64,000 nt of DNA from Macrostomum lignano. Taxonomy: Eukaryota. Below, one piece after another: positions 15,601 through 18,600 of the stretch. The notes below the pieces were generated by a model that saw only the letters and a list, made by a program, of their open reading frames with translations, made no database searches and was not told where the DNA came from. Position 1 is the stretch's first letter. Each line of letters opens with the position of its first letter. The translations under genes and the position numbers were made by a program. The DNA is taken from NCBI GenBank assembly GCA_002269645.1, contig NIVC01002867.1:62001-126000 (forward strand), written 5' to 3'.

Positions 15601-18600
15601 ACCTCAGTGTGAGCAGTATCTCTACCCCAGTGTGAGCAGCATCTCTACCTCAGTGTGAGCAGCATCTCTACCCCAGTGTGAGCAGTATCTCTACCCCAGT
15701 GTGAGCAGCATCTCTACCCCAGTGTGAGCAGCATCTCTACCCCACTGTGAGCAGCATCTCTACCCCAGTGTGAGCAGTATCTCTACCCCACTGTGAGCAG
15801 CATCTCTACCCCAGTGTGAGCAGCATCTCTACCCCAGTGTGAGCAGCATCTCTACCCCAGTGTGAGCAGTATCTCTACCCCACTGTGAGCAGCATCTCTA
15901 CCCCAGTGTGAGCAGCATCTCTACCTCACTGTGAGCAGCATCTCTACCTCAGTGTGAGCAGCATCTCTACCCCACTGTGAGCAGCATCTCTACCTCAGTG
16001 TGAGCAGCATCTCTACCTCAGTGTGAGCAGCATCTCTACCCCACTGTGAGCAGCATCTCTACCCCACTGTGAGCAGCATCTCTACCCCAGTGTGAGCAGC
16101 ATCTCTACCTCAGTGTGAGCAGCATCGCCATCTCACTGTGAGCAGCATCTCTACCAAACCTAAACAGAACTCAACTCACCTGAGTCTGCTCATCCCGACT
16201 GATGTACACCCTCCGCGGCACCTCCAAGCTGACCAACTGCAGCTGATGCTCCTTCGGTCGATGCGCGGACAGTACATGCCCCTATCAGTGAACAGCATGC
16301 AGCCGCTCTCTAAGGCGCAGATCACGTGATAAACTGCTGTACACCGGGACCGATAGCAGGCGAGGCCGGCACCGAGGCGGTTGCAATGCGAGCAACGGGT
16401 TTTCAGGGCGCGACGAACAGCGGTGTCGACGTTAACCAGACCGCCCGAGACAGTCTCGTAGACGTCGAAGCACCACAGGGCGCAGTTTAGATGCAGCCAG
16501 CGGCCGGAGTGGAGATTCAACAGTCGTCCGGGGCCGTCTGCGGGAAGGTCGCCACGCTGGCAGCACAGCACGCAGACGCGAAGATCGGCGAGGCCTGCTG
16601 GCGGCTTCAGCGCGCCGGACATTTTGCCGAGGAGCTGCGATTGGGAGTAAAATGGAAAGGGAATTAGCATCTCTGTCACGGCCCACTCCACTCCCACTCC
16701 GCTCCGCCTAGCACCTATCTCACTCCGTCTAGTACTCACTTCACTCCGACTAGTACTCACTTCACTCCGACTAGTACTCACTTCACTCCGTCTAGTACTC
16801 ACTTCACTCCGCCTAGTACTCACTTCACTCCGACTAGTACTCACTTCACTCCGACTAGTACTCACTTCACTCCGACTAGTACTCACTTCACTCCGACTAG
16901 TACTCACTTCACTCCGTCTAGCACCTACCTCACTCCGCCTGGCACCCACCCCACTCTGTCTGGCACTCAACTCACTCCGCTTAGCACCCACCCCACTCCG
17001 CCTAGCACCCACCCTACTCCGCCTAGCACCCACCCCACTCCGCCTAGCACCCACCCCACTCCGCCTAGCACCCACCCCACTCCGCCTAGCACCCACTCCA
17101 CTTCGCCTAGCACCCACCCCACTCCGCCTAGCACCCAAACCACTTCGCCTAGCACCCACCCCAATTCGCCTAGCACTCACCCCACTTCGCCTAGCACCCA
17201 CCCCACTTCGCCTAGCACTCACCCCACTTCGCCTAGCACCCACCCCACTCCGCCTAGCACCCACCCCACTTCGCCTAGCACCACCCCACTTCGCCAAGCA
17301 CTCACCCCACTTCGCCTAGCACCCAACCAATTCGCCAAGCACCCACCTCACTTCGCCTAGCACTCACCCCACTTCGCCTAGCACCCACCCCACTCCGCCT
17401 AGCACCCACCCCACTTCGCCTAGCACCAACCCACTTCGCCAAGCACTCACCCCACTTCGCCTAGCACCCAACCAATTCGCCAAGCACTCACCCCACTTCG
17501 CCTAGCACTCACCCCACTTCGCCTAGCACCCACCCCACTCCGCCTAGCACCCACCCCACTTCGCCTAGCACCCACCCCACTTCGCCAAGCACTCACCCCA
17601 ATTCGCCTAGCACCCACCCCACTTCGCCTAGCACCCACCCCACTCCGCCTAGCACCCACCCCACTTCGCCAAGCACTCACCCCATTCGCCTAGCACCCAC
17701 CCCACTTCGCCTAGCACCCATCCCACTTCGCCTAGCACCCACCTTACTTCGCCTAGCACCCACCTCATTCCATTAAACTTAAAACTAGTTACCGTGATAA
17801 ACAAAATCAACTTAAAACAATGCAAGCAACACACCTCGCCAATTTCCTCTGGCGACAGAGGTTGAAAGTCCTGAGCCGGTTTAAAATCTGAGCCGTATTT
17901 ACGCCAACGAACTCCTTTCCATTTTTTCGTCTGACTGCCGATCCGCTGCTCCCCAGACAGGGTTCGCCGACGTCCGGCTAGCATAGCCGACTTGCCGACG
18001 CTCATCTGGCGCTCCATAGCTTTGGATCGGTTGGTTGGCAAAGGCGATTGCAGCACAACTGGAACTGTAGATAATTCGTCGCCGATGTACAATTGACGAC
18101 GGTAATCCGGCTGATTGGAATCTTCAGAGCGCTGCAGAATGAGTGAATTAGGAGTATGTATAGGTGTTAACCTAACCTGAATAGGCACTAGAACACCTGA
18201 AGTAGCACTATAACACCTGAACTGGGCACTAGAACACCTGAACTAGGCACTAGAACACCTGAACTACCCACTAGAACACCTGAACTACCCACTAGAACAC
18301 CTGAACTAGGCACTATAACACCTGAACTAGGCACTAGAACACCTGAAATAGGCTCTAGAACACCTGAAATAGGCTCTAGAACACCTGAAATAGGCTCTAG
18401 AACACCTGAACTGGGCACTAGAACACCTGAACTAGGCACTAGAACACCTGAAGTAGGCACTAGAACACCTGAACCAGGCACTAGAACACCTGAACTAGGC
18501 ACTAGAACACCTGAACTAGGCACTATAACACCTGAACTAGGCACTAGAACACCTGAAGTAGGCACTAGAACACCTGAACCACGCACTAGAACACCTGAAA

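Follow-up and report, generated by a model that had tools for sequence, protein, structure and literature searches.

A single missing base in exon 12 of a KMT2C/D-type gene probably reflects a deletion in the assembled consensus

In the window, a stretch of 64 kb of DNA, a gene of the KMT2C/D type lacks one base relative to any functional reading, and the deficit is confined to five nucleotides within exon 12, upstream of the regions coding for the FYRN, FYRC and SET domains. We consider it probable, at a rough estimate of 0.8, that this lesion arose through loss of one base from the assembled consensus of an intact and functional gene and would thus be absent from the organism itself. This verdict is grounded in indirect evidence, in the form of a lack of decay, and in base rates.

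The gene extends over positions 9332-44538 on the minus strand. It was modelled with 15 exons, starting with an ATG at 44538-44536 and closing with a TGA at 9334-9332. All 14 introns are bounded by GT-AG and all junctions other than those of exon 12 are compatible in phase. The acceptors of exons 2, 4 and 8, located in the low-complexity middle of the gene, are ambiguous; since every alternative keeps the frame, the length of the coding sequence modulo 3 does not depend on their choice. This length amounts to 13,238 nt, which is 2 modulo 3 and hence one nucleotide below a multiple of three, as had been noted in a preliminary description of the locus. Addition of a single N at the lesion results in one open reading frame of 4,412 codons that terminates at the natural stop.

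The domain organization of the predicted protein starts with two PHD clusters, the first in exon 2, encompassing an ePHD-like domain (PF13771/PF13832) and two PHD fingers (52.4 bits in Pfam), the second in exon 3 with three PHD fingers (80.7 bits in Pfam). These are followed by a weak HMG-like stretch, whose HMG_box score of 17.2 bits falls below the Pfam cut-off of 25.4 bits, a long middle region rich in Q, A and P, a C-terminal ePHD finger (PF13771, PF13832), FYRN and FYRC (62.8 and 79.9 bits), which are contiguous in exon 13, and the SET/post-SET region. The SET domain is matched over its full length (1-105 of 105 positions, 88.1 bits) and, like FYRN and FYRC, scores well above the Pfam cut-off, and the SET/post-SET motifs NHSC, ELTYDY and CxCxxxxC are all found. 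With PHD clusters, ePHD, adjacent FYRN/FYRC and SET/post-SET each matched, the initial assignment of the gene is upheld and its architecture confirms, as far as domain composition can tell, a predicted H3K4 methyltransferase of the KMT2C/D type (MLL3/4, Trr+Lpt). The gene is an ordinary member of this family and, by homology, its predicted product would be the catalytic subunit by which a COMPASS-like complex places methyl groups on H3K4 at enhancers.

Exon 12 (16180-16634, minus strand) encodes the C-terminal ePHD finger and the linker leading to FYRN and comprises 455 nt instead of the expected 456. Its incoming frame is set by exon 11 (17835-18131, minus strand), which is in phase 0 at both ends and whose translation, KKWKGVRW...EEIGE, can be aligned to the region preceding the ePHD in homologues. 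The acceptor of exon 12, tcgcag/CTC at 16634, is equally in phase 0 and joins EEIGE of exon 11 to LLGKM, whereas the donor CAG/GTGAGT places the last base of the exon at 16180. On the opposite side, exon 13 (14270-14841, minus strand), which carries FYRN and FYRC in intact form, opens in phase 0 with VSAALMSD. Because the end of exon 11 and the start of exon 13, both fixed by homology, are in phase 0, exon 12 must be a multiple of three in length.

Within exon 12, the incoming frame encodes LLGKMSG...HLNCALW..., which is recognized as extended PHD finger (Pfam zf-HC5HC2H, zf-HC5HC2H_2), up to an invariant cysteine of the ePHD, the TGT at 16269-16271 (minus strand), as last residue read in this frame, whereas beyond Cys-Pro the translation resembles nothing. 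The invariant final histidine of the HC5HC2H Zn-binding pattern, encoded by CAT at 16261-16263 (minus strand), is readable only in the -1 frame, which past the lesion continues for 28 conserved linker residues up to the donor. A re-reading of the minus strand from 16271 to 16257 returned TGT CCG CGC ATC GAC, in agreement with the preliminary description. The missing base is located at 16264-16268 (minus strand), where the five nucleotides CCGCG occupy a place in which two codons are needed, as defined by the C-x-x-H spacing and the frames found in tblastn. It had also been proposed that one extra base would regain the last Zn-binding histidine, the RRVY.xRDE motif and phase 0 at the 16180 donor. 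All three parts of this proposal were reproduced: the match to PF13771 is extended to the end of the domain, the motif is encoded in the -1 frame of exon 12 and this same frame runs exactly to CAG/GTGAGT. The lesion is embedded in the sequence TGTCCGCGCAT, which contains three CpGs and in which a 2-base run is the longest that can have been shortened.

The switch of frame is equally evident in comparison with homologues. In tblastn searches, the matches of five homologues proceed from frame -3, ending between 16266 and 16269, to frame -2, which sets in at 16263 or 16239, leaving no gap that could accommodate an intron. The joined two-frame matches have E-values of 1e-27 to 1e-38, which argues against a chance alignment as cause of the switch. 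In an alignment across the ePHD of 14 sequences, comprising the window and 13 homologues from flatworms, molluscs and vertebrates, both flanks of the lesion align to all 13 homologues with no residue absent except for the split codon. The C-x-x-H spacing is invariant in 13 of 13 homologues, and so are, at identical spacing, the residues L, V, R, V, R, E and Q of the downstream pattern L..V.R.V...R.E..Q. As assembled, the ePHD matches positions 1-87 of the 91 in PF13771 (37.1 bits) and stops short of the final histidine. After restoration of the frame, with X for the split codon, it covers positions 1-91 (41.5 bits) and the last ligand of the H-C5-H-C2-H pattern is regained.

The frame is not restored by any alternative splicing pattern that we could devise from the sequence of the exon and its borders. 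The preliminary description had seen no rescuing micro-intron, and our enumeration of all frame-restoring excisions across the lesion bears this out, as every excision with GT, GC or AT at its start and AG or AC at its end has a donor that departs from the consensus and would delete either the RRVY motif or an invariant Cys or His. An alternative donor located 4 nt downstream (GTTGAG) would extend the exon to 459 nt, but take in an in-frame TGA, and no shifted acceptor was found at exon 13. Neither a shifted donor nor a shifted acceptor would bring the 28 conserved linker residues back into frame.

If taken as assembled, the sequence would predict a truncated protein. Splicing of exon 12 to exon 13 leads from ...SRL via the junction codon AGG to TGT CGG CTG CCC TGA and the premature stop, five codons into exon 13 at 14826-14828 (minus strand), terminates the protein with ...SRLRCRLP at residue 4035 compared to 4412 in the full-length product. 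Both consequences anticipated in the preliminary description, a stop early in the exon that follows and a SET-less product, are thus recovered. In the resulting protein, the ePHD is broken and FYRN, FYRC and SET are all lost. The stop is located upstream of two further exon junctions, a position for which nonsense-mediated decay (NMD) of the mRNA would be expected.

The region downstream of the lesion bears all features of a gene under constraint. Its 409 codons contain neither a stop nor a further change of frame, and the splice sites are canonical. Besides exon 13, also exon 14 (12007-12304, minus strand), which was assigned by homology and encodes the first half of SET, and exon 15 (9332-9607, minus strand), which contributes the remainder of SET, the post-SET region and the stop and is about 70% identical to homologues, are intact. 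With no relative being close enough at the DNA level for dN/dS, we have used agreement with invariant columns of the alignment as gauge of constraint. Of 121 columns downstream of the lesion that do not vary among nine homologues, 119 are matched, the two differences being K>R and D>N, compared to 23 of 25 invariant columns upstream in the same alignment. In a leave-one-out comparison over the whole alignment, the agreement of the window is 0.97, which is within the range of 0.89-1.00 spanned by genuine orthologues. Neither invariant columns, nor splice sites, nor second lesions show a trace of relaxed constraint downstream of the lesion, and the latter would thus have to be either extremely recent or absent from the organism.

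As judged by sequence similarity, the closest available relatives are found in flatworms of the genera Macrostomum and Schistosoma. The closest database match is a partial gene model of Macrostomum lignano (A0A1I8H1V6) with 65% identity over FYRN to SET, whereas Schistosoma shows about 52% identity to the gene in the window. The Macrostomum model starts at VAAALLSD, with a residue that corresponds by homology to the codon with which exon 13 opens (14841), which suggests that the position of the phase-0 intron preceding this exon is conserved between the two and that the window is of flatworm-like origin. A protein search with the whole query retrieved nothing above 44-50% identity, with all matched sequences being shorter than 600 residues, so that annotated orthologues of full length may have escaped it, and a search of metagenome contigs (JGI) for the exact pattern with 4-8 bases at the gap returned no match. 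The uninterrupted frame from ePHD to SET, which is absent in the window as assembled, is present in relatives. In a sequence from Logan SRR30952579 (6001-8266) and in Schistosoma mattheei OX103944.1 (6001-7692), ePHD, FYRN and FYRC are part of a single uninterrupted open reading frame; the break of this frame ahead of SET in the former is an ordinary GT..AG intron of about 56 nt. The module is intronless in both sequences, in Schistosoma including SET, compared to three introns in the window.

The combination of a lone lesion in 13.2 kb of otherwise flawless coding sequence, conserved downstream exons and relatives that are read in a single frame favours an indel in the assembly. The true gene would then contain six bases between the Cys codon at 16271-16269 and the His codon at 16263-16261 and its product would be a normal protein of full length, with about 4,412 residues, the defect being presumably introduced during sequencing, consensus calling or polishing. 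With its 455 nt, exon 12 is enclosed like an island by minisatellite arrays on both sides, which measure 560 and 1,072 bp. The first, with 24.3 copies of a 23-bp unit (15596-16155), follows the donor at a distance of 25 nt within intron 12, and the second, with 51.3 copies of a 21-bp unit (16693-17764), precedes the acceptor by 59 nt within intron 11. These flanking arrays may have hindered the mapping of reads in polishing. Frame defects were found in none of the other 14 exons of the model, and a polished draft would be consistent with a rate of one error in roughly 13 kb or more. Among the errors of long-read assemblies, indels that fragment genes have been documented, and tools such as Kastor are built to detect their signature (PMC12007338). 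The consensus of collapsed haplotypes can likewise yield apparent frameshifts, which have been shown to be removed by allele-specific assembly (PMC8445201). Our case resembles indel errors of draft assemblies in being an isolated 1-nt deletion in an intact, conserved and intron-containing gene, which leads to a prompt stop at a place where homologues are read through.

Certain observations are at odds with this assignment. Unlike in typical errors of draft assemblies, the lesion resides in the GC-rich CpG context CCGCGC and not in a long homopolymer, the usual place of deletions in long reads. The origin of the error in long reads, as put forward in the preliminary description, is an assumption, the window itself showing no sign of the sequencing platform. 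Moreover, several of its repeat arrays contain 0% indels between copies, and the assembly is thus not generally ridden with such errors.

The locus is unusually rich in minisatellites. In the 3' half of the gene, almost all introns bear a distinct array of their own, with units of 15-36 bp and up to 57 copies, with further ones found at 9676-11494, 13869-14182, 14891-15144, 18175-18771 and 19627-20043. Translations of open reading frames with repeat-like character are also found at about 3160-4670, 6300-6750, 43130-43550, 55800-56900 and 57200-62460. Within the coding region, exon 7 (2,667 nt) harbours a tandem repeat of 11.7 copies of a 72-bp unit (24372-25212, minus strand; 92% matches, 0% indels), which in frame translates into about 12 copies of an acidic, Cys-containing unit of 24 residues. 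The repeat is putatively coding, with a second frame being open as well. Long homopolymeric runs of amino acids, such as about 23 consecutive prolines and many runs of Q and A, are found in exon 3 (35577-38459) and in exons 4 and 6-9. Since these runs are all in frame, the repeat-prone stretches are devoid of frame-disrupting indels.

The gene is arranged tail-to-tail with an adducin-like gene on the plus strand (758-5525), whose Aldolase_II/adducin domain is split over open reading frames at 2778-3194 and 3667-4254 and which terminates in a basic tail (5298-5525). No frame defect was seen in this neighbour, which indicates that errors, if present, are sparse. On the other side, the region 53214-55870 on the plus strand contains coiled-coil open reading frames, one of which matches MIEAP (mitochondria-eating protein) with 26.5 bits compared to a Pfam cut-off of 27 bits, and probably represents another gene upstream of the KMT2C/D gene.

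Although we regard it as unlikely, the deletion could be genuine and young, carried by the sequenced individual or strain in heterozygous form or as a recent event. In such case, the assembler would have picked the mutant haplotype while the other allele supplies function, and the mRNA would probably be degraded by NMD, with the stop being located more than 50 nt ahead of later junctions, or else give rise to a SET-less protein of 4,035 residues. The deletion is, after all, contained in the sequence as given, its site is not a typical homopolymer context for errors and, as a recent mutation would likewise leave the downstream exons perfectly conserved, it is in this respect identical in appearance to an artefact. 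Truncating variants are well known in human KMT2C and KMT2D, where they underlie loss of function of the Kabuki and Kleefstra-2 type. The resemblance to these alleles extends to a frameshift ahead of FYRN/FYRC/SET, a stop in an internal exon and the predicted outcome of NMD or a SET-less protein. However, whereas the human alleles are documented in reads and pedigrees, the lesion described here is known from one consensus sequence alone. The prior for such an event in a large, dosage-sensitive and highly conserved gene is low, and the window shows no second lesion or altered splice site that would point to real inactivation.

Considerably less probable is a fixed inactivation, in which the locus would constitute a dead duplicate, as a redundant paralogue or as a truncated 'reader-only' KMT2C/D specific to this lineage that has lost its catalytic module, with methylation carried out by another copy. 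Since gene duplication is extensive in the genus Macrostomum, extra copies are conceivable, and a fixed SET-less protein would not be absurd in light of the situation in Drosophila, where the ancestral KMT2C/D protein was split into Lpt and trr, separate genes for an N-terminal PHD/HMG 'reader' and a C-terminal catalytic half. Against this stands the lack of downstream decay described above, with its near-complete agreement in invariant columns and intact splice sites. Of the hallmarks of pseudogenes, which include several lesions and relaxed constraint, we find a single lesion. Additionally, tblastn did not detect a second copy of the exon within the 64-kb window, where the only other match is the N-terminal ePHD-like domain of the gene itself (42628-42882). 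While the fly proteins illustrate that reader and catalytic halves can exist as separate polypeptides, each of them is equipped with a start and a stop of its own, and the division falls between domains. In the window, by contrast, the break deprives the ePHD of its last zinc ligand, and the downstream part is devoid of an independent start.

In its strictest form, with the deletion being both real and fixed and the locus making only a 4,035-residue 'reader/scaffold' protein without FYR or SET, this explanation becomes highly improbable. The gene would then be a natural separation-of-function allele, with catalysis provided by another copy or being dispensable, and the conserved but untranslated exons 13-15 would need an explanation of their own, such as a separate downstream transcript. 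The perfect conservation of these exons and the location of the break inside a Zn-binding motif both disfavour a fixed 'reader-only' locus.

Finally, a restoration of the frame by programmed -1 ribosomal frameshifting, insertional RNA editing or unusual splicing appears hardly credible: although the required shift of -1 has the direction of classical programmed frameshifting, as in animal genes of the PEG10 type, and C-P-R-H would result exactly if the last C of CGC were read twice, exon 12 in its incoming frame contains no X XXY YYZ heptamer, consistent with the preliminary description, the 103 nt downstream show no significant stimulatory structure (-34.8 kcal/mol, z = -1.68, 12 of 200 shuffles as good), with half of the fold residing in the intron, no homologue, each being read in a single frame, changes frame at the position of the lesion, the frame-restoring excisions and the alternative donor fail for the reasons given above and insertional editing of nuclear mRNAs is not known in animals.

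If, as we favour, the deletion is an artefact of the consensus, its relevance is limited to annotation. Automatic annotation would produce a model that is truncated, divided into two or marked as being of low quality, and it could erroneously be concluded that the orthologue is devoid of SET; the remedy would be polishing of the site or its annotation with a frameshift exception. Were the deletion real, which nothing found in this analysis favours, it would constitute a naturally occurring allele, null or catalytically dead, of a central regulator of enhancer chromatin, with relevance to the debated question of which roles KMT2C/D plays independently of catalysis.
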